Positions 16,116 through 61,039 of a stretch of DNA of 64,000 bases are shown here, piece after piece. Each line of letters begins with the position of its first letter. Position 1 is the stretch's first letter. The position numbers and the translations under genes were made by a program. The DNA is from Epiperipatus broadwayi. Taxonomy: Eukaryota > Animalia > Onychophora. The DNA lies in NCBI GenBank assembly GCA_028023455.1, contig JAQFVV010000010.1:11036001-11100000 (forward strand). Reading direction: 5' to 3'. The notes under the pieces were generated by a model. That model did not search any database, was not told the origin of the DNA, and saw only the letters and a program-made list of their open reading frames with translations.

Positions 16116-16253
16116 AAACAGCTTGTGTAAATGCAAAGAATGGTAATCATATGATATTTTGATAATTTAATTTTAGTTGTTATTTGTAACTTTAAATAAA
16201 AAATGTAGTGTACCCATAAATTAATCATTTCAATAACTATTACATAAAAAATA

Positions 16254-17163
16254 TTAAAACAGGTAAAACTCTCTATACATATTGCCACTCAGTGCACAAG
16301 CCAGGGTAATCAATGGATGTCAGAAGGCTTGTGCATAAAATCCCCAACAATTTCCCACTCATCCAATATCCCCAGACAAGTTTCTGGTTTGTGGCCTTTG
16401 TCAGTAAGGAGCCTTGGATCTAAGAGCACTGCACCTAGATCTTGGGATCTAGTGCAATTCTCCAACAATCACCTTTTATCTCTACTTAACTACATAACTA
16501 TGAGTCTTAAGTTGAAAACACTATATTTTTAATTCAAGCTCATCAGCTTATATAGTCATATAGCTCTGAACTCAGTTCAGTACCTATACATTTTGGTGTC
16601 TTTGGTTTTTTAATAACCATAGCCAACACTATCCGATTAGGCAGAATTGGTTTTAAGCCAATAAACATCACACGATCACCATTTCTTATGCTTGCTTATA
16701 ACTGTTATTGGCTTAAAACCAATCCTGCCTAATAGGATGGTGGTGGTTATGATTATTAAAGAACCAAAGACAACCAAAATGTATAGGTACTGAACTGAGT
16801 TTGGACCTATATGACTATATAAGCTGATAAGTTTAATTGAAAATATTATGTTTTCAATTTACAACTCATAGTTTTGTAGTTAAGTAGAGATAAAAGGTGG
16901 CTGATGGAGGGTTGCATTAGATCCTAAGATCTAGGTGCAGTGCACTCAGATTCAAGGCTCCTCACTGACAAAGGTTACAAGTCAGAAACTAGTCTGGGGA
17001 TATTGGATGAGTAGGCACTAGATGGGGATTTTATGCACAAGCCTTCTGGCATCCATTGATTACTCTGGCTTGCACTGAGTGGCAATACTGTATGTAGAGT
17101 TTTGCCTGTTTTAATAACAGTTACAAGCAAGCATAAGAAATGGTTATCAAGTGATGTTTATTA
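16254..17163. mobile_element. Family A foldback of two full units with 13-bp TSD
   Basis: Arms meet at ~16706. TACATAAAAAATA at 16241-16253 and 17164-17176. Both HHR cores read CTGACAA (G8 lost). Confidence 0.9.
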
Positions 17164-18123
17164 TACATAAAAAATAGTGATTGGATTAATTAATTTATGG
17201 ACATCCCACACTTTATTTAAAGTTACACTTAACAATAGTACATTACTTATCAAATTGAATTAAGGTGCTTTTTTAGAAAATATTTTTTATATAATTTTTT
17301 AGTATTCAAGTCTATCCCTATATTCACTCCAATTTTTCAAAATTATTTATCATAAACAGGAAGCTATTTGTATTTAATTTTAAAAACTGAAAATGTAAAC
17401 ACTATCACTGTGTTTCTACTATTTGAAATTAAATTCATGCACATTAAAACTCAGTTCCAAGATTATTGTGTTTATGTAATCAATGGTTTGAAGAATCAAG
17501 TTATAGTTAAACAATCAAAAGAAATTAAGATTTCATCCTCCCTTTCTTTTTCCTTCTATTTTAATCAACTGCCATCAAATTAAATGAAAACATACTTTTA
17601 AAAAATTATAATACCATCTATTGTACATCACTAAAACTTACCAATCCAATTTCAATGCAGTTTTATATGTTGCTCATCAACACTGTTAGGTTGGACAACT
17701 CTGAAATATTGCATTTTGACATTGCACTGCCATCAAAACAGAACACTTATAGAAATTTTGAAGAAAATCCATTCCAGTAGTAGTAGGTTAAAAGTCAGAA
17801 GATTTGAAACAAATAAATAAAAGTCTTAAGTTAAATAAAAGAATTTTAAATATTACTCTAAAAGTAAGTTTTTTTCTAACACTTTTAAAGAAAAAAGATG
17901 GGTAACATTACAAAAAAATCATGTTAAAAATGATAATGTTAAATTGCTTCTGAGGGTGGGTACAAATCTACTAAAAATAATGATACATTCAGCTTGTTAG
18001 AGCAATATTACAACCAACCCTTCATTATAGATTTAAACTATAGTATTCTTGTTAATCAAAGGTTTGTTGGAGATAATAAAACTATTCGACTAGCAATTTC
18101 TAAAGTAACTATTTATTTTGTAA

Positions 18124-18308
18124 TAGTGGTTCTCAACCTTCCTAATGCCACAACCCTTTAATACAGTTCCTTATGTTGTGGTAACCCCCAACCTTAAAAT
18201 TATTTTTTTATTACTTCATAACTGTAATTTTCAATGGCCTTAGGTGACCCTTGTGAAAGGGTTGTTCAACCCTCAAAGGGGTCACGACTCACAGGTTGAG
18301 AACCGCTG
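18124..18308. mobile_element. hAT MITE resembling SPIN/URR1 non-autonomous elements
   Basis: TIRs (T)AGTGGTTCTCAACCT / AGGTTGAGAACCGCTG; TSD TTTTGTAA / TTTTATAA (7/8). The body matches my recollection of URR1 (GGAACTGTATTAAAGGG, TGGGGGT.ACCACAACAT, CCCTTTCACA.GGGTC). Confidence 0.85.
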
Positions 18309-18462
18309 TTTTATAACTTAATTTTCCCATGTATATTTTTGAAATAATCTATAATTTCGAAATCAGAAGAGTGACATTTTAATGAGTAGCAGAATCGTAT
18401 CAGCAAGGATATTTTATAAATCTGAATTTAACTGTAACAACACTTCTATTTCATAACTATTT

Positions 18463-18555
18463 TTTTCCATATATCAAAACATTGACTGGGAAGCAAACCC
18501 AGGCCAGCTGCTTAGAAGGCAGCTATACTAACCACTAGGCCACCAATGCTTGACT
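18463..18555 (-). mobile_element. tRNA-derived SINE copy
   Basis: Reverse complement starts TCAAGCATTGGTGGCCTAGTGG and contains GGGTTTGCTTCCCAG. Confidence 0.7.
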
Positions 18556-19439
18556 AACTATTTTCATGTAGTAGATAACTACATTGATCAATTCTCTGAC
18601 CATTTTAATAAAATAACATTTACTAGATAGTAATTAAGTTGTTCTTTCAATAATTTCAGATTACATTAAAAAATATTCAACAACTCTCATAAAGATAAGT
18701 TTTAAATCTAAGTTCATATTTGTTAACATCAACATTTCATTTGCAATACATGTATTTTATTTCAAAATATATTGTTTTGTATGTCTGTGTGTCATCTACA
18801 AATTACATTATTTCAGCAATGCTAACCTTATAATCAGTTACAGAAGTGATGCTACAACATAATTTCCCATTGGGTTACTTGAGTCATTGACCTTTGAATA
18901 TAAAAATAAACAGAGTTTAAATGCAATAATAGATGCTTGGTTGTGAGATATGCTATCAGACCGAGAAAAATTCGGTAAATCACTTGTAAGCCAAAGAGGT
19001 GAAATGATGCTAACAAATATATGTATTGTATTATATAGCCTAAGACAAAAAGTGAAATTTAATATTGTGAAATAAGTGATTAGATTGAGATAAAAAAATG
19101 TTTTCTCTGTGGAATGTGATTAAACGAATATTCAAATAAACATCATCTCTAGCGGCCATCGTGCAGGTCAGGTAAGAGTACCAATAATAAGATAGGATAA
19201 TTAATATAAGACTAATATAAAACAGAAAGAATATAGATATCTGAGAAGAGAGATTTATTGTATGCATAAAGGAGAATGTAATGCATGTTTTAATGATAAA
19301 GTAACTGAAAAATAAATTATCACAAGAAGTAAATAATATTTACTAAGGTAGTAAACCTAAAGCATGTGCAGTTGAAAATGTGAAGGTAGGGACCTCTACA
19401 GGTCTTAACCACAAGCTTACACAGTTAAGGAAAAATAGA

Positions 19440-21200
19440 TACTGGATAGAATTTACCTGCAGCTGAAAAAAGTCATATACAAAAATGAGCTCAGAAAGAG
19501 CAAATGTGACAGTCGATAAAACACAAGGTAAGTGATAAATAAAATGTATTAAGAAAGAATTGTCAAATAATGAGAAATAAGTGCAAGAAAAGTTAGTTTC
19601 AAAATTAGAGAAGAATTATGAGAGAAAATCAAAATTATTGTGAAGAAAAGTCAAGAGAATAGGCAAGTAATCATGGAAAAAACATAAAATATAATTGATG
19701 AAGAAGGGAGAGTAAAGAGGAAAAGTGGAAAAAATTCTAAAAGAAACTAAAATGAAATATAAATCAATGAAGTTGCAATATGAAGAAATGAACATGAGAG
19801 TTTGAAAGAGCAAATCGAGGCAATCCAGAAGGAAATAGTCAAAGATTTGCAACAGTTAAAAATAGGTATCTATTATAAAAAATAGTCAAATACTTTATTA
19901 CTCATGAATGCAGAAGTTTAAACACTAAAAGATGATAGAGTGAATTCCAGAGTCCCCTACTTTATTCTGAACTAAAGCATTTAGCATAAAGAAGTATTTA
20001 AATAAAAGAAAACAGTTGAAGAAATAGCTTGAAAAACTGCTGCAAAAAAAAAAGTAACCAAAGAGGAATCAAAATCTAACAAAAGATTTAAATCTAAGAG
20101 AAAGAGATACAGCATGTTAAATGGCAATATTAGGATTTTTGAAAATAAAAACTTTCCACATTAATTCTGGAAAAATACTAACGAACCATTTGGACAGTCT
20201 TGATAGCTATTTCTGTGTGAATTGGATGGAGATATAATATAACACCCACATGAAAGAACTGGCAGGGAGATTTTAGTCATTGAAGAAATCCTGTTTTATA
20301 AGTTTCTAAGCCAATCTTAATTGTCACGAGGATTATAAAAAACATTATTGAAGGAGTGTTGTACAAAAGAATAAGACCAAATAAGCAATACAGCATAGGA
20401 TCAGGAGGAAGCTACAGAGTTTATTCAGATAGAAGTGGCTAACCTCAAATCATTAAAAATAGATACCATATCAAATTTAGCAAAATAATTTGGAAACTAT
20501 CTTTGCCCTATAAAATTGGCTAAATAATCATGTCCAATGATTAAATAATGATACAGTAGTTGGCTTAGCTGCTTAATTCAATGGACATTGTCAATCTAAT
20601 TCAAAGAGAACATGAAAAAGAGACTGAATTTTCAAATTATAATAATAAAAATTTATACAAGAATAAAGATAACTTTAATGCAAATTACATGAGTGGAACA
20701 AATTAAGAGACCTTCTCAACATGAAAATATGAAGCAATGACATAAAAAAGATAAACTGCCCAGAAAAAAGAAGATATGTCCAAAGTAGATGCTTATTTTT
20801 AAGAGAGTGGGTTGAGAGTCAACCTAGCTAGAACTTAGTGTAAGCCCAAATCAACAAAGAAAAAGCCTATACAAAAATGGCTGACTAAAAAGGAGTTAGA
20901 TTATAAGGGTAAAAATGACATACCATCATCTATCAAAGTTTTCAGTATATCGAAAAGTAAGATGACTAAGTACTATGCCAAAGCAGTCAAAATATAGCTC
21001 TGTATATTTTCTGTGACCCATGACTGAGGAAAAAAGAAAATAGCAAAAAAGCTCAATAGTAATCAAAAGAGATAGTTTATTACAGTAAGTCAGAAGACCT
21101 GATATATAGATTACTCTGTATCTAAAGGACAAGACTGCCTAAATACATGACAAAATCTATCCAAAATGTTCACATCTGATGGATAAGGAACCAAGATAGT
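19440..21200 (+). pseudogene. Heavily decayed gag-like (K/E coiled-coil) LTR-element internal region
   Basis: Purine-rich interrupted K/E-rich frame at ~19480-19860 and an integrase-tail-like stretch at ~21050-21200; no LTRs found. Confidence 0.3.
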
Positions 21201-21923
21201 AGGATAAATTTTAATCTGCATCTGAATTAAAAATGGAAAAAAAAAACTAAGATGCATAAGATAAAAGGTATCAGTGAAGAAAAGAAATATCTCACTAAGT
21301 AGACAAAAACATTAATAACATTTAATGATAGAGAGTTTGTTATAAGGTAGATTGATGGTGTGGGATGAAAGAACAGTTTCTGTTTTTATTATTCACAGCA
21401 AAGATGAAGATTATGTTTTGTTGAGACATTGCTGAATTCAAGTTAGTTTATTATTAACTATTATAAAATTTTTAAGGTGGATTTTTCTGCACAAAAAGTG
21501 TGGAATTATAGTCATTCAATTGACAAAACCATATTCAAATGGTGAAAATCTCTGATTTAGCTACTTATAATATTTTTTATACTAGTGACATAAAATTCTA
21601 GTGATGTTTTGCAGAACTAATATTGTGATATTTAGATTAATATACTGGCTCTGAAGACGGTTGCTTTGCAGGTCATAAAGGAATTTCAGTAGAAGTACTG
21701 TAGACTTATACAAAATAGGAGTCTTGCGTAGATAGGAGAGTGATCTTATAATAAACTTCATCTTTACCAATTACATATAGTAAGGAGTATGTCAACCTAG
21801 AATAAAAGAAGTGTCATAAATACTTTTTTTGATCATATAATTTACACTGACTATATACCTACTGCATGAAAAAGCCATGTAAAAAGAAGACAAGTTAAGG
21901 GTCACCATTTGAAAATATAAATA

Positions 21924-22675
21924 AACATCACATGATCACTACTTCTTATGCTTGTGTATAACTGTTGTTAAAACAGGCAAAACTCATTATACATATCGCC
22001 ATACACAGCAAGCTAGAATAATCAATGGATGCCAGAAGGCTTGTGCATAAAATTCCCATCTAGTGTCTACTCATTCAATATCCCCAGACTAGTTTCTGGC
22101 TTGTGACCTTTGTCAGTGAGAAGCCTTGGATCTGAGAGCATTGCACCGAGATCTTAGGATCTAATGCAACCTCCAGCAGCTACCTTTTATCTCCAATTAA
22201 CTACAAAACTATGAGTCTTAAACTGAAAACACCTTAATGTTTTAATCCAAGCCCATTAGCTTATATAGTCATATGGGTCTGAACTCAGTTCAGTACCCAT
22301 ACATTTTGCTGTCTTTGGTTCTTTAATAACCATAGTTACCACTATTCTATTAGACAGGATTGGTTTTAAGCCAATAAACATCACATGACCACCACCACCT
22401 CTTATGTTGTGTATAACTTGTTAAAACAGGCAAAACTCGCTATGCGTATTTCCACACACACAGCAAGCTAGAATAATCAATGGATGCCAGAAGACCTGTG
22501 CATAAAATCCCCATCTAGTATCTACTCATCTAGTATCTACTCATCCATTATCCCCAGACTAGTTTCTGGCTTGTGGATGAGTAGGCACTAGATGGGGATT
22601 TTATGCACAAGCCTTCTGACATCCATTGATTATTCTAGCTTGCTGTGTGTCGCAATACGTATAGTGGGTTTTGCC
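21924..22675. mobile_element. Family A (subfamily A2) ~1.4 tandem units plus inverted arm, 14-bp TSD
   Basis: Period 453 bp (ACAGG at 21973 and 22426); TGAAAATATAAATA 21910-21923 / TGAAAATAGAAATA 22676-22689. Confidence 0.9.
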
Positions 22676-22974
22676 TGAAAATAGAAATACATGACCATCC
22701 CATGAAAAATAGTAATGTGGGGGAAAATGAATAAATCTTAGATTTAACCAGATAAAAAAGTAGAGATGGTAACTATTTTTATTTTATTCAGGTTGGGGAA
22801 TCTCGTAATAAAAAAACAGGACTAACTTTTAGTTCAGTTGCATACCATAAGTAAGATATATAAAATTTGCAAATTAATTAAATATTTTTGTTAAAACTAA
22901 AAGTTTGTTAATACTAGAAATAATACTTTTAAATAAGAATATTTTGTTAGCGGCAAAGTTTTTTTTTTTTGTAT

Positions 22975-23045
22975 AGCATCCATTGTTTTCTCTGGCTTGC
23001 ACTGAGTGGCTCTACTGTATGGAGAGTTTTGCCTGTTTTAATTGC
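22975..23045 (+). mobile_element. Family A fragment
   Basis: GCATCCATTG...GGAGAGTTTTGCCTGTTTTAA. Confidence 0.8.
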
Positions 23046-23565
23046 AAAAAGATGCTAAGAAGGTATCACTTTTAAAATATATATAAATAATTATATAACA
23101 TAAAATTTGCAATGAAAAAAAAAAGATAGATTTTGGAAAACGTTTTATTAAATGTAAATGTATTGAAAAGTTATTTAATTATGATAAAAGAAGAGATTTT
23201 GAAGAAGGGAGTATATTCCATGTTAGCATGTGAAAAGAAGATATAAATGGAGAGATTCCATATAGATTGATTAAACAAATCCACGTTTCTTGAAATTGTG
23301 ATCGTTTGAAAACAAAGGAGTTTCAGCAAAAGGAAGAAAAATATAGCTGCTAGAAATTATAATACCATTAACTGTAATTGAAGAAAACTGCAACCTTAAT
23401 GGGAAACAGTGAAAATCTTTGAAAATAATAAAAAAAACATAAATAATTTAGCTAGAATCAAGGTTTGTGACTAGATATCCCTTTTGCATTGCCACAGCTT
23501 GTCCAGGTGGGTAGCAATCTACTTCTTCATAATGGAAGAACTGGCAGATGGGAAAACCTTGAAGT

Positions 23566-24052
23566 ATTAAACCACTAAACATCACACAATCACCATCTCA
23601 TGCTTCTTATGAGCAAGCATAAGAATGGTGATCCTGTGATGTTTAGTGGTTTAATATCAATCATGCCTAATAGGATAATGGTGGCTATGGCTATTAAAGA
23701 AACAAAGACACCAAAATGTATGGGTACTGAACTGAGTTCAGACCTATATGACTATATAAACTAATGAGCTTGGATTATAAACATTATTGTGTTTTCAATT
23801 TCAGACTCATAGTTTCGTAGTTAAGTAGAGATTAAAAGGTGGCTGCTGGAGGGTTGCATTAGATCCTAAGATCTAGGTGCAATGTTATCAGATCCAAGGC
23901 TCCTCACTGATGAAAGCCACAAGCTAGAAACTAGTCTGGGGATATTGGATGAGTAGGCACTAGATAAAGATTTTATGCACAAGGCTTCTGGCATCCATTG
24001 ATTACTCTGGTTTGCATTGAGTGGCACTACTGATGGAGAGTTTGCCTGTTTT
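23566..24052 (+). mobile_element. Family A near-full unit with short inverted 5' arm, 13-bp TSD
   Basis: AAAACCTTGAAGT at 23553-23565 and 24053-24065; inverted arm ~23568-23617. Confidence 0.9.
23892..23950 (+). ncRNA. Type I hammerhead ribozyme, intact core (family A)
   Basis: ATCCAA GGC TCCTCA CTGATGA AAGC CACAA GCTA GAAA CTAG TC^ TGGGGA TA TTGGAT; predicted cleavage after 23936. Confidence 0.8.
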
Positions 24053-24553
24053 AAAACCTTGAAGTGTCTATGAGAATGCCTTTTTTTCTAGAGTTGCATA
24101 AAGTGAAGTCAGAAGTAGTCTAAACTTCTACAAGTCCCAAGAATCTTTAAAGACCAAAGTAATTTGTTAATATGTAAAGTTTTCTAAATAAAAAAATATT
24201 TAAAACTGCAAATATCATAAATAAAATCATACCTGAAAGAAAATTAGATGAAGAGAATAGTGCAACAAGAATGATGGCAAATTCAACCAAATTAAAATTC
24301 ATTACTGTTAAAAGTTTGGGAATGCACTAAACTAAAAAATACATTATAATATGGCAGATGCTTGAGAAACTGAATGTCAGAAATTTTAGATATAAAAGTT
24401 GAGTATATTAGTTAATGTAGAAGTTTAAATTATACATACTATGTAAAAAGTATAATTTCTAATTAATAGCATATTTTTTAGAAAATATTAAACCTTAAAT
24501 TATAATAAGTTAATGTTAATTTATTACAATTTTTGTCTTAAATATTATTTATA

Positions 24554-24628
24554 TTTTCCATATGTCAAATGCGTTGAGCCGTGCTTGGAAGGCAGCTATG
24601 TTAACTGCTAGGCCACCAACACTTGACA
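24554..24628 (-). mobile_element. Degenerate tRNA-derived SINE copy
   Basis: GGCAGCTATGTTAACTGCTAGGCCACCAACACTTGAC matches the family 5' half. Confidence 0.55.
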
Positions 24629-25403
24629 AATATTATTTATAATTTGAAATATTAATATTTTTTAAAAACTATCTCTTAAGTTAATGATATTAAAAAAATA
24701 TCTCTCATATTTCTCTTTAATTTTAACTTAAAGCATTGAAAATATGAAATGACTGTACACTATTTTTTAATAATTTTATCATTCTCAGAAATGTAGTAAC
24801 TGATAGATATGTCTATATTAAAGAACAGTTTTTATTAATCCTGGGATTAAGATATAATAAATAAAAAATTGCAATGTAATTCATATATAATCATTTTTTA
24901 TAGCAAACAGTATTGGAGAGTCTGGTTTAGGTTCATTATACCTCAATCGAATAATAAGCATTTTATTAATAGTAATAATCACAAAGCAAATGATTTTCTA
25001 TTTAGGTCAAATAGTAGCAATATTAAAATACAACTTTGCTTATTTGTATTTATATTTAGTTTTACATCTTAGAAGTTTCTTTATCTTTCTTATCTAAACA
25101 GGAATGTGTGTGTTCATGCTATATGCATGATAATAATGATTGTGATAGTAGAACTAAATCACGAGGTAAGTGATAATATATGGCAATAATGATGAGATAA
25201 GTAATCATAATATAGTTATGTGATTATGGTGATAATGAAATAAATGAAGCTGCCTGATAAACATGATATCTAGAAATGATTAAAATCATAAGAAGCATTA
25301 TGTTACATCAAGAACATAATTATGTATATGAAGTCTTGTGATCAGCTGGGTTGAATCCAGGGATGAAGATTGAGATAAATAAGAGATTGTAAGAATTAAT
25401 AGG

Positions 25404-25821
25404 TTTTAAAACAGGCAAAACTCACTATACATATTGCCATACACAGCAAGCTAGAGTAATCAATGGATGCCAGAAGGCTTGTTCATAAAATCCCCATCTA
25501 GTGCCTACTCATCCAATATCCCCAGACTAGATTCTGGCTTGTGGCCTTCATTAATGAGGAGCCTTGGATCTGAGAGGGATCTGAGAGCACTGCACCTAGA
25601 TCTTAGATCCAAGGCTCCTCACTGATGAAGGCCACAAGCCAGAAACTAGTCTGGGGATATTGGATGAGTAGGCACTAGATGGGGATTTTATTCACAAGCT
25701 TTCTGGAATCCATTGATTACTTTAGCTTGCTGTGTATGGCAATATGTATAGTGAGTTTTGCCTGTTTTAAAACAGTTATACACAAGCACAAGAAGTGGTG
25801 GTCATGTGATGTTTATTGGTT
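25404..25821. mobile_element. Family A (A2) head-to-head foldback, 14-bp TSD
   Basis: TAAGAATTAATAGG at 25390-25403 and 25822-25835; arms meet at ~25603. Confidence 0.92.
25607..25665 (+). ncRNA. Type I hammerhead ribozyme, intact core (family A)
   Basis: ATCCAA GGC TCCTCA CTGATGA AGGC CACAA GCCA GAAA CTAG TC^ TGGGGA TA TTGGAT; predicted cleavage after 25651. Confidence 0.82.
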
Positions 25822-27362
25822 TAAGAATTAATAGGATTTGTAATACATTGGCCTTGATTAATAGAGGTACTGCCAAGTGTTGGACATGGGTAATAAAACT
25901 GATTTTTGTCTACAACCCGATCTGATCTCTTGTGATACTAAAATATGTGGTTTCTTTCAGTTTTCAAAAATAATGCATCAATGAAATGGTATGAAAGAGA
26001 AATGCTCTATCAAATTACAATATACATATTGTACCGTATTTTTGTATAATTAGCATTGGTAATTTAAAATTAAAATTATTACATTTTTTAAAAGAGAGAA
26101 TTTTTAAAAAATATAATCTGATTTATTTTAGACAATGTAAATTATATATTTTTTCTAGTTAAAAAAATAAAAAGAGAGACAATAACAAAATGTTATTTTT
26201 GATTTTGATAAGATAAGAATATAAATTCTTATCGTAAAACAATTAACATTATTTAAAGTTAAAATCACAGCATTACTTCACCATAATTAAAGATGGCCAC
26301 TGAGGGGGGGGGATGAATTTAGAAACAATAATTACAATAAATTGGTCAAAAGTAAAAAGGTGTAAACAATGTGTGCACGGTAGACTAAAAATCAGGGAGG
26401 GTACAAAAGCAAACCCTTTGTAGATCTTTCATCTTACATCTTTTGTTTTCATCTTCTTTTGCCTGGTGTTATTTATGACCTCCAAAAACAATTTAATCTA
26501 AACAGATTTTGATCTTTTAGAGGGAATCTAAAATGCAGCAAGCTATTTCCATCAGTGGACTGCATTGTTGTAACATGTGAGTAGAGAATAGTTTGTTCAC
26601 AATGCTTTCTTCCTTCCTGAAATTGTATAATGCTGTGAATGAAGCCATCACTTCCCTGAATTTTTGAATCTCTGGACTACCTACAAGCTGTAATAATATC
26701 ATACAAAAGATCCCACTCAGGACAAACAAAACCATGCATGGGAATTCTCTAAATGCTATAACTGAACAGTTGAAACTTACCGATAAGAAACTTTATCTTA
26801 TATGTTATAAGTAATCACATTCTTGAAACTATAAGTAATTTTGAAGACTGTGTTTACTCATATTACAGACAATTAGAATCCCAAGAACCTTTGCTTTTGA
26901 TACTCACCTTATTTTTAATATTATATTTTATTCTCTCCTTAGAATTATAAATATTTATTATATTTATGAATTAATAAACTTTATGAATATAACTTATTTT
27001 GTTGTCTATCTAAATTTATTATTAGCATATTATTAGTTAAATTCTATTATTATTATTTTGCCAAATAAATTTCCAATGCTGTATCTAAAAATATAATCCT
27101 CCAGAGTGTAACAAATTATCATTTAATAGTGACTAATAAAGATAGTTGGTGAGATCCAGTGTATTCGTGTATAAAATCCTGGTGTCTAATAAACAAATTA
27201 AAAACTGGTTCTTTTTCCCATTATTAGTAAAAGTTAGTTATGTTAAAAGTGAATTGTGTGATTGAAAAATAATTACTTTCATGAAAAATACCCAACATAT
27301 TTCTAATAAACAAATTATAAGAGCGGATTTAATTTGGCCACCAAATATGTGTAATATATACA

Positions 27363-43534: not shown

Positions 43535-43632
43535 AATAAATATTAACTTTATGCACAAGCCTTCTGGCATCCATTGATTATTCTGGCTCGCATTGAGTGG
43601 CATTATTGTATGGAGAGTTTCGCCTGTTTTAA
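43535..43632 (+). mobile_element. Family A fragment
   Basis: TTTATGCACAAGCCTTCTGGCATCC...GGAGAGTTTCGCCTGTTTTAA. Confidence 0.85.
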
Positions 43633-44150
43633 AAAATATTCCATTTAAATAATAACATTATAAAAAAATATTATTGATAGGAGAATATTTGAGATTTTTT
43701 ATGCACACGTAAAATATCGATGAGTTTTAAAGACATTAAAAAAAAGAATAGTATGCATCTTCATAATTTTACAGTTGGATATTTATAGTTTTTTCTTTTT
43801 TTAAAATATGGAATAAATAAATATGTACACACTTATAAATAATCATTTTGAAGTACATAAAATATATTTTGTTGTAACAACTGATTTATATAGATAGGTA
43901 ACAAAAATATTAATCTCTGTACTTCTGCTCAGATTCATAATTAAAACATTAATAATTTTAGCATAAATAATAAAATGGTAAGTAAACACACAGGATACCA
44001 TTAATTAATATGTATGGTTAAGACAGTGTGTGTTATTGTTTCTGCAAATGTTTAACAATTCTTTACATATATATATATAAATCTTAATATTGAAATTATA
44101 AAATTATTTCTCCTTAAGATAAATATTTTTTATTACATTTATTTTGGTAC

Positions 44151-46116: not shown

Positions 46117-46839
46117 TATTCTATGTTTATAATTAATTAAAACAAAACATTTATATTAATCTTTAACTTTATTTAAAGTTTATATCTTGGCTAGGAATGA
46201 TATGATAATCTCTAGCTTAATAAATGATTAGTAATAATTATTAATATATTTATCTAAGGTGGATAGTGTAAAGATGTGAATGCAGGAAGGTTGAATAAAA
46301 AGTTCTTAGATATTGATGATCATTTTGTGGATTTAAATTATATGCTAAAATGATTTAATTCATCTATCAACTTTTACAAAAATTATTATAATGACTCATG
46401 TTTAAGATTCATAATAAAACAATGATTATTATATTAAGTATATTAAAAGATTTGTTTATTTCAAGTTTGAATGAAATGAGAGAAATAAAGATATGAGTGC
46501 ATATCAATATCCAGCTTAATGAAATATTCAAAAAATTTATTAGGATATTTTATAAATGTTGGAGACAGATTCTCATTATTATTATTACTTGATGATGATG
46601 ATTATATGACTGCAATTTAAACTTCGTTTAGGGCAGTACTTTTTTCTTTACTATTTTTCTTATTTATATGACTGATCTTAGGATTTATCTTACATCTCTA
46701 TTTTTATTATGTTATACTAAGGATTGCAAGATTTTCTCTACAAATTGATGATATTAGGTAATTTATGACATGGCACAATGATAATAAAATGGTGATTAGT
46801 ATTGACAAATGTTTAATAGTATCATATTTTTAATAAATT

Positions 46840-47101
46840 ATTAAAAATAGGCAAAACTCTCCATACAGTAGTGCCACTCAGTGCCAACCAGAGTAATCAA
46901 TGGATGCCAGAAGGCTTGTGCATAAAATTCCTATCTAGTGCCTACTCATCCAATATCCCCACCCTATCTACTGCACAAGCCTTCTGGCATCCATTGATTA
47001 CTCTGATTGGCACTGAGTGGCACTACTGTATGGAGAGTTTTGACTTTTTAATAACAGTAATGTGCTAGCATAAGAGGTAGTGATCATGTGATGTTTAGTG
47101 A
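46840..47101. mobile_element. Family A short foldback with probable 12-bp TSD
   Basis: TTTTAATAAATT 46828-46839 / TTTTAATAAGTT 47102-47113. Confidence 0.85.
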
Positions 47102-47879
47102 TTTTAATAAGTTCTGAATTATCTTTGTATCTCATAAACAAGAGGAGACTATAACTTTAAATTATAGCTTGGGGAAAAGTGATTTATTCCCTTTGTTTAC
47201 ATATACATGGAGCTATGTGTGATTTAAACTTTACATATTAAATCTTGTTTAATTATTACAATCAAGGTGTTAAAAGTGATATGTTGTCTACACCTTGTAT
47301 TATTAATTATGAGTTTAAGAACTTTTAACTGCCATATTTCATTTGTTTGATAAATTAATTTCACTCTGAATTACCAAAAATGTTGACAAAAGTATGCTTA
47401 TAAACATCAGAGCAACTAAAAATAGATGGATTCATTTTTATTGGATTTATCCTATTCTTGATTCATTTGTTCAACATTTAGAGTGCTTTCAAGTCATGGC
47501 CTGGGAAAAGTGCTTTACTCCCATTGTTTACATTGAGGTATGTGTTTTTTTTAAAACTTTGTATCTATAACGTACTGATAATCACTAAATTAAATGTAAT
47601 ACTTTTCAAAAAAATCTAAATGTCATACTTACAAATAATGGACCTTTTCATGCATATATCAAGTACATAGTTAAGAGGGCTCTCAAAATTATGGGTAAAT
47701 GTTAGGTATAGCAAACTATTTAATGATAAAATATGAATTATTTAAGTATTTTGTCTTTACTATTGTTGATTATATAGCTGTTATTTGGAGTCCTCACTCT
47801 TAAATGGAATATTATTGAAATCCAATTATTAAAAGATAAATTTTATAGACACATCAGGTTAAATAATAATAGCATGGTA

Positions 47880-48319: not shown

Positions 48320-49390
48320 TTGTATATACTGAACTTAATGTAATTTAGAAGGCATTTGAACTCAAACTTTAAGCTCCCTACAATTATCCACTCCATCTTA
48401 TACAACTGACAGACATGATCATATACATGTAAAAAGAATAAATGATCTTCAATATATGTATTTTATACTGAATCAGCACTCACCAGTTGATCCAGATCAT
48501 CTTCCACACACACATATGTAATCGGTGCTCAGTTTATATTAAAATAGCAAATTTTCATACTTCAATGGACAGGCTTCAATCTTCTCCATCCTCCAACTCT
48601 TCAGCCATCCATACCATTGAAAATCTGATGGAACACTCAAAGCCCTTGTTGATGCCAATATTGTTGTCATACCCATGTTGACTTTAAGGCACTCTGACCC
48701 CTCACACATAATACCTTAATATGTCTATTTAAATACACAGAAGAGGGATGTCAGAATATAGGCAGAATATGTAATACTTAAATACAAGTATAACGATTGT
48801 AAAAAAAAAGTATATTGTCTATACTGAACTTAATGTAATTTAGAAGGTATTTGAACTTAAACTTTCAAGCGCCATACAGCTATTTAACTTAGATTTTCAA
48901 TCACCCTACATCCACTCCATCTTATAGAGCTAACACATGACCACATACTTATATTTAAGCATTACATATTCAGTCTGTATTCTGCCACCCCTCTTCTGTG
49001 TATTTAAATGGATATATTAAGGTATTATATGTGAGGGATCAGAGTGATTTAAAGTCAACATGGGTATGACAACAATATTGCTATCAACAAAGGATTTGAG
49101 CATTCCATCATCAGACTTTCAATGATATGGATGGCTGAAGAGTTGGTCGACGGAGAAAATTGAAGCCTGTCCATTAAAATATAAAGACTTGCAATCTTAA
49201 TATAAACTTAGCACTGATTATATATATGTGAGACCAACTGATGAGTGCTGGTTCAGCATGAAATATGTATATTGGAGATCATTTATCTTTTTCACATGTA
49301 TGTGGACATGACTGTCAGTTGTATAAGATGGAGTGAATAGCTACAGGGAGCTTAAAAGTCTGAGTTCAAATCCCTTATAAATTATAATAT
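48320..49390. repeat. Family Y large foldback (~450-bp arms plus partial direct duplication), Penelope pLTR-like
   Basis: Arm ~48320-48790 is mirrored by ~48945-49390; ~48820-48950 repeats the start of the left arm. Confidence 0.8.
49234..49275 (+). ncRNA. Minimal type I hammerhead ribozyme (family Y)
   Basis: CCAA CTGATGA GTGCTG GTT CAGCAT GAA ATATGTAT A^ TTGG. The sister copy at ~52265-52285 gives a palindromic stem III ATACGTAT. Confidence 0.75.
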
Positions 49391-49499
49391 GTATGTATTT
49401 TTTTTAACTTTATTTGTACTATTTATGTAATTTCTGTGTATTCAATAATTGGCATTTACTGCTATTGAATTGTACATTAAATAAACATTTAAATGGAAT

Positions 49500-50262: not shown

Positions 50263-50264
50263 TT

Positions 50265-50348
50265 TTAAAACATGCAAAATTCTCTATACAGTAGTGCCAC
50301 TCAGTACAAGCCAGAGTAATCAATGGATGCAAAAAGGTTTGTGCACTT
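50265..50348 (-). mobile_element. Family A fragment
   Basis: AAAACATGCAAAATTCTCTATACAGTAGTGCCACTCAG...ATCAATGGATGC. Confidence 0.8.
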
Positions 50349-50745: not shown

Positions 50746-50927
50746 AATATTGCAATTCAAATAATTCTTCTTATGCTTTTTTCAGCAAAAACTTTTTATT
50801 ATTATTATTAGAAGAAGAAGAGAATAAGATCTGATGAAGACTGCAAGGGACAGTCGAAACTGTAATAATAATATAAAAAAGTTTTTGCTGAAAAAAGTGT
50901 AAGAAGAATTATTTGAATTGCAATATT
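50746..50927. repeat. Foldback enclosing a minimal hammerhead (50827-50868 plus)
   Basis: AGAT CTGATGA A GACTG CAAGGGA CAGTC GAAA CT GTA^; the sister copy at 14213 supplies the pairing ATCT for stem I. Confidence 0.7.
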
Positions 50928-52139
50928 AAATATTAATTTACTGTATTTATGTGCAAAGCAGAAATATAAAAGCAAAAATATTTTATATTATTCATATTAA
51001 TTTTATGACAAACAATGTTAGTTCTTAAAGTATTTTCAAGGAACAATTTAACATTATATGAATAAGATTCTCTGGCATATTAGAAAGAAAATATCTATTG
51101 TTTTTTATATTGATATTAGAATAAATATTAGAGAAGAATTCAGTAAAATAAGAATTATTCAAGCTAGCAGATATATTAATTTTTGTTATCACTGAAGAAT
51201 GAAGTATGTTATCATTCATACTAGAAGTAAAAAAAGAGTATCCAAAATTATTTTCCCTATTATTAACATTATTATATATATTATTGTTAAATTCTGTGCA
51301 TTAAAAATAATAGGATCTGTGAGCTGGAATGAATTTGGAAGCATCAGCTAGAGAATTATGTATCCTAAAAATAATAAGAAGAATTAATATTATTATAATT
51401 GTTGTTGATGTTTGATTTTGTCAAATCAACATCAACTTGTGGGAGTCATATAAATACTATTTTTGTAATTGGCTTTATTCATTAGGGTGATAACGGAATA
51501 TTTATCTCAGAACTGATCATTTTTTTCTTTTTTTAAAATACTATAATCATTTGTTATTCTATGCAACAGTCAATAAATAGGTAGCTTAATTTAATGTATA
51601 ATGCTAGAAGTTGATTTCCCAATCAGAAGGCATTCATAGTGACTATTTCAGAAATATATCTAAAAAAATCTTAGAGTAAATGTGGAAGAATCACAAAATA
51701 GTCAGACATGTTGTCATTAATCTGAGCCTATAATGGAGGTTTGGAAACTCATTCTGACCAAAATTTTATCATATCATAAGAAACCTGCGTGTTAAATACC
51801 AAGATTGTGGATTTTATTTTAGAAGGGAATAAAAATGATTGTTGTTTGAAAAATATATAAATCAGTAAAAAAAACCATTTTTTTTTAAAATAGAGCTTGT
51901 CACCAAAAGAAAAATTTCACAAACATTTAATTTTAAAGGTCTTGACTTTTTCAGCGATCTTTATTTATGTTTCAAGAATGTGCGTTGAAGTAAATATTTT
52001 AAATATAGTTTAAAACGATATTCCATATATATATAAATTAAATTGAATAATAAAACCAAATATATAAATATTTAACCTGTTTTAAAACTTACAATTAGTC
52101 TAAAAATGATAATAACCTCAATCGTCACAAATAATTTGT

Positions 52140-52540
52140 AATAATTATTAATGTAATATATAGAGTATATGAGCACAGACTTTCACACGACCCACCACTG
52201 TCCACACCATCTCATAACACTGATACACTTGAACACACATATGTTGAAAAGATAAATAATCACCAATATACGTATTTCATGCTAAACCAGCAATAATCAC
52301 TTGGTCCAGACTACCATCTCTACACATATATGCTATAAGTGCTCAGATATATATTAAGATAGCCAATCCTCATACTTTAATGGACAGGCTTCAATCTACT
52401 CCACACTCCAACTCTTCAACCGTCCAGCCAATTGAAAATCTGATGATGGAATGCTCAAAGGCAGTGTTATGAGATGGTGTGGAGAGTGGTGGGTCATGTG
52501 AAAGTCTGTGCTCATATACCCTATATATTACATATATAGA
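52140..52540. repeat. Family Y foldback with decayed hammerhead
   Basis: GAGCACAGACTTTCACACGACCC / GGGTCATGTGAAAGTCTGTGCTC arms; interior matches ~48430-48660. Confidence 0.8.
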
Positions 52541-53236
52541 CACAGGTATATAATAAGCCTGTGTGTTTCAGTTATTATAATTATTAATGTATTTTTTTAA
52601 AATTGACGTATAAAAGCTGTGGGTGCAGAAAGTGTGACAATTGGAAATCAAATTGTGTTAATTATTTAATACAAAGTATTCCAAAATAAAATTACTTTAA
52701 AAGAACATCCATATAAACATCGTATAAGTTTTATGTAATAAAAAGTAGAAAGAATAAATGAATGAGAAATACAAAATTTTAAATAAAAAACTATGTATCC
52801 CGTGCAGAAAATCATGAAGAATCAAATGCAATATACATGTTGCCTATGCGTGAACAACATAGTTGGAAAAAGATTTGTTTGCATGGATAAAACTAAACAT
52901 TTAATTCCAAAAAAAAATAGTCTACTTGTTGGAAATGTGTTTGTTAGATTAATTACAGAAAAATCTCTTAAGTCTGCCAAAGATTACTATCAAATGTTAT
53001 TCTTTCCTTTTTAGATATTAATATTGAGCAAAGAAATATTGATTTATGATTACATCTGGCAGCAATACTAATTGTGTATTAGTTTGACTTTGCAAATTAA
53101 ATAACTAGTATAATTGAAATAAGGTCAGGTAATATGCTGTATTCATTTTTGTTTCCAAACTCAATCATCAAAAGTAAACAAATTGGGTATTAATCTACAA
53201 TTGCACCAGTCCATATAGAGCATGGTAATGTTGATT

Positions 53237-53577
53237 TTAAACCACTAAACATTACATGATCACCATTTTTTATGCTTTCTCATAACTGTTATTAAAACAG
53301 GCAAAACTCTCTATACAGTAGTGCCACTCAGTGCAAACCAGAGTAATCAATGGATGCCAGAAGGCATGTGCATAAAATCCCTATCTAGTGCCTTAGATCC
53401 TAAAATCTAGGTGCAGTGCTCTCAGATCCAAGGCTCCTCACTGATGAAGGCCACAAGCCAAAAACTAGTCTGAGGATATTGGATGGGTAGGCACTAGATA
53501 GGGATTTTATGCACAAGCCTTCTGGCATCCATTGATTACTCTGGCTTGCACTGATTGGCTCTACTGTATGGAGAGTT
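53237..53577. mobile_element. Family A foldback; HHR has G12-to-A change
   Basis: Arms meet at ~53392; core CTGATGA AGGCCACAAGCCA AAAA CTAGTC. Confidence 0.88.
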
Positions 53578-53879
53578 CATTTCAATAATAATTTATTAAC
53601 AATATATAGTGATTCCATTCTGATGAAAATAAAAATTGTACAATAACATGATTATATTAATGTTCTGTTTGACATCTGGCTAGAATGAATTATGTGAATG
53701 CAACTGTTATACCACTTATGTGGTTGGGTAATAGTGAAGAAAATTTGTATAGTGTGTGTGATACAAAGAACTTGTTTAACATGGTTAGAGTGTTTTATAT
53801 AAGCATAAGTATTTTTTAAGATTGCCTGATCTAAAAGGCTAGGTTGGTTGGAGTTGATAAACAGAAAGAAAGTAGTGAA

Positions 53880-54800
53880 ATTAACAATTAGGTACCATCA
53901 AAGGTTTTACTGGAGGCAAGGAGCTGATCACGTTTCTTGATTTTTTTGAGTGTTTGATAAAACAATGGTATAACTTGTAGTAGTGGAAATTCCATGAGTG
54001 TTTTGTGTCTTACAATCCATATGGCACAAAGGAAAAATATAGAAAGCCTTATTATTGAAAATGTTCTGTTATGTATGGTATTTTCAAGTGAGGGAATCAT
54101 GTCAGTTCTTATGTTGGAATTGATGATAATCATATCTTTCAGCATTTTTAGTCTTAGGCATCAGTGTATAATATGCTCTATGGTTTCTTCTTCATGAGAG
54201 CACAGACCACATATTGGGTTGATGCTAGAAATATCTCTGGTGATAAAGAACCCATTTGTGGGAAGCCCATTAAGATTAATTTTAATGATGAAGTTAAGGA
54301 ATTTGGGCTCCAGACTCCATCTTTTGAAGTATGTAATTAGTCTTTGGTTGGTTATGTTTAGACTGTTTTTAATGAGCTGTTGATTAGGTTGTATGCTTCC
54401 CATAGAGTGATTTTTTGGTCAAGATTAGAGGGCATAATCGGGTTATATAGTTTTAAGTGTCCTACTAGTAATGATACCCATGACCTGGTAAAAAGCGGTG
54501 GATGATCAGTCGGTACAATTTTTTCAATAATGTTGGAGTATCTGAAGGAGTGTATAAGATTATGCAGAGTATTGTGAGTTTTTTGTAATATGATTGCCTG
54601 TATCGAGTAGAATGACAGGCCATTGTACCCGCATGGCCATTGGATATCTCACAAGCTAATTGTCACTGTTCTTCCTCTCCAGAGAAGTTTGGTACATAAT
54701 CGGTTAATTTTGTTTTGAAATTGTTTTGTAATTTTAATGAATGGAAGATAATATGAGATTTTTGGCATTATGATCATGTTGAGGCCTACCTTTCCATATA
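53880..54800 (-). mobile_element. 3' fragment of an L1/Tx1-like non-LTR retrotransposon
   Basis: GKVGLNMIIMPKISY, NGLPT...CGLCSHEEETIEH (zf-RVT-like) and AIWIVRH motifs in broken frames. Confidence 0.7.
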
Positions 54801-55261
54801 GTGAGAGGTAACTGTATGAAGAGTTTTGCCTGTTTTAATGATGATTTTACAATAAGTGAAAATTCAAAATAAAATATTTATTATAAAAAAGATCAAAAAC
54901 CTACATCATCATCTGATAAAGTATATAGCTCATCATTTGTACCCCTCCTTCATGTACATATTAAAAGGTGAAAAATATACAATTCTAAAGTGAATTTGCA
55001 TAATGTATATCCATAGATAGAAGAGCTATATAAGATGTAACCTAATCAGCCGTAAGTTGTAAAGGTCACATCTGTGTGTTCACATTTATCTGTTTTTATA
55101 TATTCTCTTATTATTATTTAATATATATTTTTAAAGAAAGTATTTATTACTGCAAGTTGAATTGAAATTTTACAATTTAAGAATAAGCGCTGTTCAATAA
55201 TTTATAGGAATTTTTGTAGATTTTCACTTTATATCAACAATGAAGATATTTATTTTGCTAG

Positions 55262-55426
55262 GTTTGTATGGTGACATGATTAATGAAATGGCAGGAATTG
55301 TTGGTGATGTTTTATCTACAGTTAAACAGTATAATATAGAAGAAAATACGTTAGCCTTTTTTATTTCTGATAATGGGCCTCATATAGAACTATGCCTCGA
55401 AGGAGGAAGTCCGGGAATATTAAAAG
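55262..55426 (+). CDS. Next internal exon of the same arylsulfatase
   Basis: Acceptor tttgctag|GT. Translates (G)LYGDMINEMAGIVGDVLSTVKQYNIEENTLAFFISDNGPHIELCLEGGSPGILK(G), carrying the YGD..EM, NTL.FF.SDNG and GG..G..KG sulfatase motifs. Donor G|GTTAGC at 55426/55427. Confidence 0.92.
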
Positions 55427-55749
55427 GTTAGCAAAATATCTTCAGTATACATTTTAAAAATTCTTTTTATTTGCACACGTACATTCTTGTTACACACAGA
55501 TAAAAAAAAATTTAAGGTAAAATACTATAGTCAAATATTTTTATTATTTTTAAAATAAAAAATTTAAGTTTATTAAAAACAGATTACATTTTACAAAATA
55601 TTTAATCTGATATTCTCATAGATATATTTGCATATGCATATGAAAGGTTCCTGTGCTGTTACATCTGCCTAATATATATATAATTTGAGTTTGAATCCAA
55701 GATTGAATAAACTTAACTTTTTTCCCAAATTCGAATAAATCTTAGCATA

Positions 55750-55852
55750 TTTTTTTTTTTTCCATATGCCATAGCATCGGCCGGGAGATGAACCCACAAC
55801 CGTCTGCAGCCAATTACTTGCTTGCAAGACGACTGCGATGACCTCTCGGCAA
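55750..55852 (-). mobile_element. tRNA-derived SINE copy (divergent)
   Basis: CATATGCCATAGCATCGGCCGGGAGATGAACCC...GACCTCTCGGC. Confidence 0.65.
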
Positions 55853-57009
55853 CTTCATTCATAACCTGTAAATTATGTCTGGCAATCATTAGAAAACGAA
55901 GATTATAAAAAAATACTTAAACTCTCATCAGCTAGAAATTGGCAAAGCGGGTGAAGTTGGCGTGGAATAGGCTATATGTGATGAATTGAGGCAAACATAA
56001 TTTTTAGTTTTCTGTAAAATATAGTATTTTAAAAAAAATCAAGACATCTATTATCCAACTCCAATGCCAAAGCATTGAAAAAATTATTGATTATGAGATC
56101 AGCTTGCATGTGGTATTAACTGATTCTTTTCTGTTAAAAGGTGCTGGAATTTCACAGTTTCTATTCTATTTCGTTATAAAAGATCAACAACATAAAAATT
56201 AAAACATCTTTACATTTCAATTCAAGCTAACTTTTTATAAGGCTAATATTAGATCAGCAATTATCAATTATTATATCAATTTCAGTTATAAATAACAGCA
56301 GGTAACATTGGTCTTTAAATAAACACTATTTTTATACTAATTTTTAGCTAATTGGTATTTTTTGATTAAGATTCTGGGCACTACCATTGAATTCAGACAG
56401 CTTACAATATTCAATGTTTGGAATTGAATTAAAAATGATAACAGTATCTATTTCCATGTAAGCACCAAAAGTTTATAATGCTGAGTCTAATTATTGTATA
56501 AAATATATTGTTGATGATCATTCTGCTGAATACAAACACACATCTGTGTAAATATGTAATACGTTTAATACACAGTGTCTGAGATAGAATTTAAATATAC
56601 ATGTAGTAGTATCTTCCAATAATGACAGGTTAGAGATCAAATTCAGCTGTTAAGAAAATATTAAATGGATTAAGTCCTTTTTTCACTGAGAAATGCTTTA
56701 ATGACAAAGCAAAAAATCTTAATTCTATTGTATATAATATGTATTTTACATGGTTTGGTGCAGTGATAGAATGGTAGATTATGGAATTCAGGTCCATGGA
56801 TCATGACCTAATACTGACACTTTTGATGCTTAAACTTCGTATGAAAGCCTGAGCAATAAACCATTGGATTATTTTTCTATGGATTATGCTTTTGCAATTT
56901 TGCAAGATCTATTAAGCAATGATATGAAAGTAAAACAAATCTTATGTATTTTCTTTATTTATAATGACAAATATAAATTTGAAAATAAATATATTTATTA
57001 ATGAACTCA

Positions 57010-57596
57010 CTATATGTATTGCCACACACAGCAAGCTAGAGTAATCAATGTATGCCAGAAGGCTTGTGCATAAAATCCCCATCTAGTGCCTACTCATCCA
57101 ATATCCCCAGACTAGTTTCTGGCTTGTGGCCTTCATCAGTGAGGAGCCTTGGATCTGAGAGCACTGCACCTAGATCTTAGGATCTAATGCAACCCTCCAG
57201 CAGCCACCTTTTATCTCCACTGAGAGGAACCTTAGATCTGAGAACACTGCACCTAGATCTTAGGATCTAATGCAACCCTCCAGCAGCCACCTTTTATCTC
57301 CACTGATCTCCACTGAGTGGAGATAAAAGGTGGCTGCTGGAGGGTTGCATTAGATCCTAAGATCTAGGTGCAGTGCTCTCAGATCCAAGGCTTCTCATTG
57401 ACGAAGGCCACAAGCCAGAAATTATTCTGGGGATATTGGATGAGTAGACACTATATGGGGATTTTATGCACAAGCCTTCTGGCATCCATTGATTACTCAG
57501 CTTGCTGTGTGTTGCAATATGTATAGTGAGTTTTGCCTGTTTTGACAACAGTTATACACAAGCATAAGAGGTGATGGTCATGTGATGTTTATTGGC
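57010..57596. mobile_element. Family A (A2) head-to-head foldback with internal ~80-bp duplication and 11-15 bp TSD
   Basis: TTATTAATGAACTCA at 56995-57009 and 57597-57611; palindromic centre ATCTCCACT-G-AGTGGAGAT at ~57306-57324. Confidence 0.92.
57096..57154 (-). ncRNA. Type I hammerhead ribozyme, intact core (family A)
   Basis: Reverse complement identical to the consensus HHR at 25607-25665. Confidence 0.82.
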
Positions 57597-59079
57597 TTAT
57601 TAATGAACTCATTTCATTTCTAATTTAGCATTTAAAATACTTAATTTACATTATTCTTTTATCATTAGCACTAAACATAGATATGATTTGGTTAACAAAA
57701 TTATTATGTATATATTTACAAACCTTGAAAAATTGCTAGAAAAAGAAAGTGCATGGCTAATTGAAGCAGATAAACAAAGTGAATTACCAAAAATAAAATA
57801 GTACACAGTATATTTTTCAACCCAGATATTGAATGCATATTTCACCAATACCACCATAAAATAGCATGGACATATGGTGTCTTTATATCAAATCACTTTA
57901 ATCAGATATATTAGATTAATTACTTTTTAACAGAATTATAATTGTACACAAATAATAATAATAAAATATATATACTTTTTAAAGTAGTTTTTATCATCAA
58001 AATTAAAAAAAAAACCTGAGTTATTTTTCTCTTTTAAAATAAAAACTTGATTATTTATTTTTAAAAAAAGCCATTGAACATAATTTGAAAAAATGATTGT
58101 AATTTTATTTTAAAATATAATAGTAATCTAAAATAAATACAATTTTCATAATTATTTATTCATTTTGATATTATTTTATTTCCAATCTTAATGACAAAGT
58201 AAAATATTAATGCTATTGTGGGTATTATATATTTAAAAAAATATAAATATCAAATTTTTAAATATATTTTTATTTAATTAGTCAACTTATTTTAACTGTA
58301 ACATTAATACCTTATCAGACAGTGACAGTTAATTTTAATATAATCCAAAAAGTAAGGAATAAAGGCTATCATTTTCAAAGTCAATAACAAATAAATTTGA
58401 TGTTCCATGAAGTTCTTTTAAAATATTAGTGCATCTACCTGTCCAGAATCTGGAATCAAGTCAGCACTTAGTAAATCTTAGCAACTTTTTTAGTCATAAA
58501 TAGTCTTAGAATTTTTTCAGGTATATGGTCCATAGCCAATTCGACTACCATCCAATAATGATTGGTAAATGAGTATCTAGCTATTTTAGTTAATGAGAAG
58601 GTTTCAGGTAAATCTGAATTGGTCAATTGAGTATTGATATTCTAACTATAAAAAAAGGTTATAATATGTTACAATATCCATATTCCTAAAGTTGTTAAAA
58701 CCAGAATTTCCCTTTTTCCCCTATCATTTTTACTTCATCCTTATTTAACTGAAAATGGTAATACTTTTTCAGATATTTTTGTGAATATACAAGCAATGTA
58801 ACTAAAAATCTGTTATAACAATACAAATTTTAAATAAATATTATTTTCTATAGCATATCCAATAGTCTATATTTACAATGCAATCAAATAAAATATATTC
58901 CTTGACATTTTCTTACAGTTTCAACAGATCAGAAATCTTCATCAGAGCTAAAATATTCAAATATCTATGCCCATAAAAATTAGTACATATTTATGCATGA
59001 CTAATTATAATTATATAACACCCTATGTATAATAATTTACGCTACAAATTTTATGAAAACAAATATTTTAATGAACTTT

Positions 59080-61038: not shown

Positions 61039-61039
61039 A

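Follow-up and report, generated by a model that had tools for sequence, protein, structure and literature searches.

How do head-to-head palindromes, each enclosed by one short direct repeat, come to be dispersed through an animal genome? The question is raised by a stretch of 64,000 nt from the onychophoran Epiperipatus broadwayi (GenBank assembly GCA_028023455.1, contig JAQFVV010000010.1, positions 11,036,001 to 11,100,000, forward strand), hereafter called the window, which is AT-rich (GC 21-35%) and in which a BLAST search with one arm of the palindrome at 16254-17163 as query found 28 pieces of one repeat, here termed family A. Its loci in the window are 11 inverted composites (C1-C11) and five solo fragments (Table 1). 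A first-pass annotation of this DNA had listed six of the composites as palindromes bracketed by a target-site duplication (TSD), and all six were recovered at the same coordinates with TSD matches of 11/12 to 15/15; five more composites, a tail on one side only, tandem junctions and the likeness to a published insertion footprint had gone unrecognised. We consider it probable that each composite is a single insertion of the type made by Penelope-like elements (PLEs), here of the non-coding and very high-copy family A.

The flanking repeats carry much of the argument. Composite ends were fixed by homology alone, and TSDs were then searched for within ±8 nt, allowing at most one mismatch. At the ends so defined, nine of the 11 composites are bracketed by a direct TSD of 12-15 bp. 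In a blind test with the identical search rule, 7/11 composites scored at least 11, a score reached by 0.75% of 4000 random position pairs in the window (at least 13: 0.2%). AT-richness is therefore not the source of the flanking repeats, and the TSDs proposed earlier withstand the objection that AT-rich flanks match by chance. No internal TSD was seen at the inner junctions of the composites. Around the TSDs, no nick-site motif was found beyond AT-richness, the boundaries being blurred by 2-6 nt of microhomology (6 nt between target and element at the S end of C9; end types are defined below). Hairpin targets are not a general rule among the nine reconstructed empty sites, eight of which are not hairpins; only that of C3 folds strongly (z = -7.5). 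The C3 target is the centre of an AT-rich palindrome of ~180 bp (16158-16253 and 17164-17254) with flanks that are 76-77% complementary, and C2 is located at the left edge of this palindrome.

The single direct TSD bears on two other histories. A second family A copy might have homed, inverted, onto the 5' end of one already in place. Recognition of their own tail region by PLE endonucleases is cited in PMC11167929, and nested insertions are expected given the abundance of family A, but a second insertion would bring its own TSD, whereas one direct TSD surrounds the whole in 9/11 composites and none lies at the inner junction. Alternatively, the palindromes might have originated at the DNA level, either as a foldback-type transposon or miniature inverted-repeat transposable element (MITE) or by replication template switching that duplicated a solo copy in inverted orientation after its insertion. 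The composites are indeed long inverted repeats, and many other AT-rich palindromes occur in the window; yet inverted duplication of a solo copy would leave inverted flanking repeats, and those observed are direct. Because the single direct TSD contradicts both successive insertion and DNA-level inverted duplication, we regard the first as very improbable and an origin at the DNA level as a shade less credible still.

The anatomy of the arms is regular on the outside and variable on the inside. In all 11 composites the arms are inverted, with the 3' end of the ribozyme-sense strand outward, and overlap in unit coordinates (by 86-403 unit columns), which extends to the whole set what had been described for six. 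Outer ends are of two kinds, S (unit 388-408) and L (unit 452-466), the difference being a tail of ~47 nt, and one S and one L end are present in 11/11 composites (P = 0.0005 if ends were independently chosen). The inner junction is unique to each composite and has 0-5 nt of microhomology (2 nt in C4, 4 nt in C1) or a short filler. Foldback elements and MITEs resemble family A in their long inverted arms and flanking direct repeat; in them, however, the termini are fixed, the TSD is short and likewise fixed, and the internal structure is copied. In family A, two unlike termini 47 nt apart instead of a fixed pair of terminal inverted repeats, inner junctions that all differ, 5'-truncated solo copies with one fixed end, and tandem junctions within arms speak against a DNA-level origin and do not fit a foldback or MITE transposon.

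L1 twin priming, reportedly described by Ostertag and Kazazian in 2001, is said to begin with priming by both 3' ends of a staggered break and to leave, within one TSD, a 5' part that is inverted and a 3' part that is direct; the second primer reportedly anneals internally on the same RNA, the segments being adjacent and non-overlapping and only one end being the poly(A) 3' terminus. The route proposed here for family A is alike in that cDNA would be primed by the 3' ends on either side of a staggered break and one TSD would result. In contrast to L1, both family A arms start in 3' start zones and overlap almost completely. The arm overlap of 86-403 columns, together with two outer ends in 3' start zones, does not fit twin priming of the L1 type, and the contrast with L1 drawn in the first-pass annotation was correct.

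That the two arms of a composite were made together is indicated by their sequence states. The states of subfamily A2 (unit columns 358, 365-366, 369, 376, 385 and 387) are found in both arms of C4, C6 and C9, as had been noted for the palindromes at 21924, 25404 and 57010, and are absent from the arms of the six remaining composites that could be scored; subfamily concordance between arms holds in 9/9 scorable composites (P = 0.0045 under random pairing). C7 has a G at unit column 362 in both arms and in no other copy, and the rare variants common to both C2 arms occur elsewhere only in the solo copy S1, ~600 bp upstream. Formation in a single event, as originally proposed, is thus supported by one direct TSD per composite, the lack of internal TSDs, differing inner junctions and same-subfamily arms, along with the rare variants common to the arms of C7 and of C2. 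Two successive insertions would explain neither the strict S/L pairing nor the 9/9 concordance. Arm-to-arm identity is 87-95% (94.7% in C6), which marks the insertions as old and argues against assembly foldbacks as the source of the palindromes.

Two side observations concern the arms. The rare variants of S1 (15181-15269) and both C2 arms lie at unit 399-403, which suggests a common source or local duplication. Internal re-copies are present within the arms of C9 (57224-57312, unit 166-254 again) and C4 (22520-22545, with a CTACTCATCTAGTAT-like segment of ~13 nt doubled), and have the appearance of slippage or template jumping by the polymerase as the element inserted.

Table 1. Coordinates of family A loci and associated matches in the window. 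TSDs are given as left copy / right copy; "new" marks composites beyond the six listed in the first-pass annotation.
Feature	Position	Strand	TSD	Arms or unit span	Remarks
C1	3772-4723		11/12, 3760-3771 / 4724-4735	minus 3772-4338 = 1.25 tandem units, S end left; plus 4339-4723 = unit 55-462, L end	new
C2	15888-16163		AATTTAATTTTA 12/12, 15876-15887 / 16164-16175	minus 15888-16013 = unit 277-404; plus 16014-16163 = unit 303-453	new
C3	16254-17163		TACATAAAAAATA 13/13, 16241-16253 / 17164-17176	minus 16254-16709 = unit 404>453/1>406, S end left; plus 16710-17163 = unit 1-454, L end with tail right	
C4	21924-22675		TGAAAATA[T/G]AAATA 13/14, 21910-21923 / 22676-22689	minus 21924-22574 = 1.4 tandem units, L end left; plus 22575-22675 = unit ~297-398, S end right	subfamily A2
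C5	23566-24052		AAAACCTTGAAGT 13/13, 23553-23565 / 24053-24065	minus 23566-23606 = tail only, unit ~420-462, L end left; plus 23607-24052 = unit 412>453/1>405, S end	
C6	25404-25821		TAAGAATTAATAGG 14/14, 25390-25403 / 25822-25835	minus 25404-25608 = unit 205-408, S end; plus 25609-25821 = unit 235-458, L end	subfamily A2
C7	46840-47101		TTTTAATAA[A/G]TT 11/12, 46828-46839 / 47102-47113	minus 46840-46961 = unit 286-407; 10-nt filler; plus 46972-47101 = unit 325-454	
C8	53231-53577			minus 53231-53391 = unit 304-466, L end; plus 53392-53577 = unit 204-392, S end	new
C9	57010-57596		TTATTAATGAACTCA 15/15, 56995-57009 / 57597-57611	minus 57010-57314 = unit 174-388 + re-copied unit 166-254 at 57224-57312; plus 57315-57596 = unit 174-457	subfamily A2
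C10	60153-60354		12/13, 60140-60152 / 60355-60367	L arm left; S arm right = unit ~288-395, inner end at hammerhead site	new; old
C11	2045-2228			L arm 2045-2106 left; S arm 2115-2228 = unit ~287-405	new; old
Solo S1	15181-15269	+		unit 319-407	
Solo copy	22976-23042	+			5'-truncated, S end
Solo copy	43548-43635	+			5'-truncated, S end
Solo copy	50265-50345	-			5'-truncated, S end
Solo copy	54802-54839	+			5'-truncated, S end
Best-preserved hammerhead motif	25614-25662	+			within C6
Rfam miRNA-type matches	15930-16071, 16609-16760, 22495-22611, 23558-23661, 25485-25691				permissive E-value

The unit itself was delimited by a search with its dimer, which gave a period of 454 nt. Arms of the composites span 0.1-1.4 units, and several (in C1, C3, C4 and C5, with at most 1.4 units per arm) cross a 453>1 tandem junction; units are therefore joined head to tail, and the template RNA would, for the same reason, have been multimeric or circular. 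All five solo copies are 5'-truncated with a 3' end at unit 405-408 (S type), and none extends past the predicted hammerhead site. Truncation at the 5' side together with a 3' end that stays at ~406 is what reverse transcription from one fixed start leaves behind.

Abundance and junctions were followed in four sequencing runs compared as contigs, which drop rare variants, with 15 of 2033 joints listed. Summed depth reached 0.4-11.5 million in family A bins against 60-540 in unique bins, so that family A is extremely abundant, although the resulting ~10^4-10^5-fold depth relative to unique sequence is not a copy count. In short-read contigs from an independent DNA run of the same species, the right outer junctions of C4 and C5 are bridged with at least 31 nt on each side, and three further outer junctions are touched by contigs that reach 22-26 nt inside the element; no inner junction was bridged among the 15 of 2033 joints listed. 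RNA-library contigs of several related species likewise contain family A sequence; neither circular junctions nor cleavage-site ends were reported.

The unit contains, on the sense strand at unit 250-291, a minimal type I hammerhead motif with a predicted cut after UC, at 285|286. In its best-preserved copy (25614-25662, plus strand), it consists of a helix I of 6 bp (UCCUCA/UGGGGA), the core CUGAUGA, a helix II of 3 bp (GGC/GCC), GAAA, and a helix III of 1 bp that ends in the palindromic loop CUAG; ribozymes of this type have been described as having a helix III of a single base pair and a palindromic tetraloop (PMC7229834). The full core is kept in 5/11 copies that span the motif, the same core recurs at 23907 (+), 57139 (-) and 3920 (-), and one copy has a compensatory change from G-C to A-T in helix II. 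Judged from these features, the motif is a putative hammerhead of the PLE/retrozyme type. With good confidence, the layout of family A can be read as a PLE terminal module, in which the putative minimal hammerhead is followed by two reverse transcription start zones ~120 and ~167 nt downstream of the cut site. The order within the unit (hammerhead, ATG inside CUGAUGA, S site, tail, L site) mirrors the PAc module of pseudo-long terminal repeat (pLTR) and start of the open reading frame (ORF); unlike that module, the unit appears to close on itself without an ORF.

This arrangement has precedents. In PLEs, Arkhipova et al. 2013 (PMC3846280) described adjacent inverted pLTRs with a 31-bp tail at one end and one TSD around the whole, found head-to-head to be the commonest arrangement, and reported an allelic empty site showing that another structure, with direct plus inverted pLTRs, had entered whole; the same PLE insertion layout appears in fig. 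2 of Craig et al. 2021 (PMC8557442). In the in vitro work of Frangieh et al. 2024 (PMC11167929), a purified PLE protein cut both strands of the target and extended each of them, and reverse transcription started at two adjacent internal RNA sites whose spacing equals the tail. Compared with the PLEs of these three studies (Penelope/Poseidon, Neptune, Nematis, Naiad and the Adineta vaga Pen families), family A is alike in its partial tandems, a head-to-head inverted 5'-truncated copy, a tail at one end only, one TSD around all, a minimal type I hammerhead (putative in family A) upstream of the region where reverse transcription starts, and AT-rich targets. It differs in that it is without an ORF and its unit closes on itself after 454 nt, in a tail of ~47 nt versus the published 30-40 nt, in TSDs of 12-15 bp, a tight range, versus 8-10 bp in A. 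vaga PLEs, and in lacking an autonomous partner identified in the window.

A second precedent is provided by the non-coding hammerhead repeats of animals, the non-LTR (long terminal repeat) retrozymes, which have been proposed to be mobilised by PLEs (PMC7229834; bioRxiv 10.64898/2026.07.22.740005). Family A and these retrozymes are alike in being non-coding, low in GC, high in copy number and a few hundred nt long, with tandem-joined units, TSDs of more than 4 bp and a type I hammerhead (putative in family A) whose helix III is a single base pair closed by a palindromic loop; for the retrozymes, a PLE origin has been proposed. They are described, however, as tandem arrays that yield circular RNA, whereas family A is found as dispersed head-to-head composites with 0.1-1.4 units per arm. 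The composites show an insertion footprint already published for PLEs; no new mechanism is called for, and family A adds a new, non-coding member to this known kind, one that resembles a metazoan non-LTR retrozyme.

What is observed is the anatomy with its statistics; which enzyme acted, how the cDNA was primed and what form the RNA took are inferences. An endonuclease of the PLE-type GIY-YIG class would make two nicks ~13 bp apart, leaving 3' overhangs. Each target 3' end would then prime cDNA on family A RNA, one at S (~390-408) and the other at L (~452-466), and the two antisense cDNAs would grow toward each other until joined at a variable point by a template jump or microhomology. Fill-in of the overhangs would produce the duplication of 12-15 bp around the whole palindrome.

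Single priming followed by a fold-back or template switch onto antisense RNA, a second RNA or the cDNA itself, a route proposed for Penelope in PMC3846280, could also give an inverted arm. Near-perfect hairpin centres, such as that of C9, where a gap of 3 nt separates inner ends at unit 166 and 174, and a similar one in C5, fit such a switch, as do arm lengths that agree within 20% in 7/11 composites (permutation P = 0.0005), and the internal re-copy in C9 indicates that the polymerase does jump. Yet if the element's cDNA snapped back on itself, the second arm would lack the 47-nt tail, and the part of the S arm that continues beyond the inner end of the L arm would have no source (the inner-end difference, L minus S, is positive in 10/11 composites, with a median near 47 nt), and the extension of both target strands in vitro (PMC11167929) also speaks against single priming, which we therefore hold to be unlikely. 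Of the two routes offered in the first-pass annotation, double priming at a staggered cut is thus the better supported, and we prefer it because in vitro both strands of the target are cut and extended by a purified PLE protein; fold-back in the form of own-cDNA snap-back fails at the tail.

Several points weigh against a PLE-type insertion by double priming. C8 (53231-53577) and C11 (2045-2228) have no detectable TSD, a divergence of 5-13% from arm to arm marks the insertions as old, and no empty allele was present among the 15 of 2033 joints listed, an absence that is uninformative as contigs drop rare variants. By nearest-neighbour identity, paired arms are not always mutual closest relatives. 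In vitro, the two start sites are used alike on both strands (PMC11167929), a result that on its own does not predict a strict rule of one S and one L end. A gene for a PLE reverse transcriptase or GIY-YIG protein is absent from the 64-kb window (ORF and Pfam search), and family A can therefore be at most a non-autonomous derivative. As to the ribozyme, Rfam reports no hammerhead (gathering thresholds for the entire window; E<=10 for 15800-26000 and for 25600-25700), an A.A pair sits at the base of helix II, and the motif folds no better than shuffled sequences (z-score -0.15). A weak monomer fold is expected for minimal hammerheads of the dimer type, so that the folding result is evidence neither way. 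Nearest-neighbour arm identity was set aside as a test, not being decisive in a star-like high-copy family, and subfamily states and rare common variants were used instead.

The PLE transposition cycle, including the role of the hammerhead, is still poorly understood, and the first in vitro system dates from 2024. Family A, whose copies are short and non-coding and sit mostly in whole head-to-head composites with clean TSDs, offers a convenient natural genome-wide record of start-site choice, stagger length, junction microhomology and the use of ribozyme-cut or circular templates. Only tentatively do we suggest that the footprints record details of PLE insertion that are new in vivo, namely asymmetric use of 3' ends, often ribozyme-cut or circular templates, and two cDNAs made in step; the S/L asymmetry, the clustering at the cut site and the arm-length patterns were recognised post hoc in 11 composites of one window. 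The invariant pairing of S with L suggests one ribonucleoprotein dimer positioned across the tail. Inner ends of S arms fall within unit 276-297 (~10 nt of the cut) in 6/11 composites, three of them at most 2 nt from 285|286, and the minus arm of C7 has its inner end exactly at the predicted cleavage site. Either arm of C3 is almost exactly one 454-nt period long and the plus (S) arm of C5 approximately so, as expected for cDNA that has gone once round a circle. Clustering at the cut site, one-period arms and matched arm lengths would agree with templates that were ribozyme-cut or circular and with two reverse transcriptases acting in step; alternatively, these patterns might stem from a hotspot of pausing or switching at the ACTAGT palindrome.

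For annotation, the composites should be counted as single PLE-type insertions and not as MITEs, foldback elements or miRNA-like hairpins. The Rfam models of miRNA precursors MIR7533, MIR1319, mir-3927, MIR475 and MIR5512 match the centres of family A palindromes far below their gathering scores; these matches are hairpin artefacts of the palindromes and could mislead automatic annotation.

Among the remaining features of the window, only four ORFs of at least 130 aa are present, none of them inside family A. The sole Pfam match among the ORFs is zf-RVT (9865-10320, minus strand, E = 8e-7), which probably marks a decayed non-LTR retrotransposon and not a PLE. It sits in a stretch (8000-12000) of strongly negative GC skew (-0.20 to -0.48). 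No convincing TSD was found at the chosen boundaries of the other palindromes, at 7533-7742, 48368-49356, 9151-9466, 52146-52538, 61038-61723, 2806-3262 and 59474-59847. That at 7533-7742 is an unrelated head-to-head palindrome with 102-nt arms (84% complementary) and no clear TSD in its low-complexity AT flanks; each strand carries a canonical minimal hammerhead core (CTGATGAG..CGAAA at 7647 on the plus and 7628 on the minus strand) with the palindromic loop III GCGC. The palindrome at 48368-49356 (~990 bp) belongs to another family, with arms of ~420 nt and 84-89% identity and with flanks that continue the inverted symmetry, and contains CTGA[A/T]GAG..GAAA-like strings at 49135, 49238 and 48604. 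Isolated strings resembling the hammerhead core lie outside family A at 50831 (+; CTGATGA-A-GACTG..CAGTC-GAAA), 58945 (-) and 30680 (+), which suggests that several ribozyme-bearing repeat families are present in the window. Finally, two tRNA-like matches (Rfam RF00005) at 18478-18549 (-) and 59339-59418 (+), with 39.5 and 32.6 bits, have the 5' sequence GCATTGGTGG in common and may be the heads of tRNA-derived short interspersed elements (SINEs) rather than tRNA genes.

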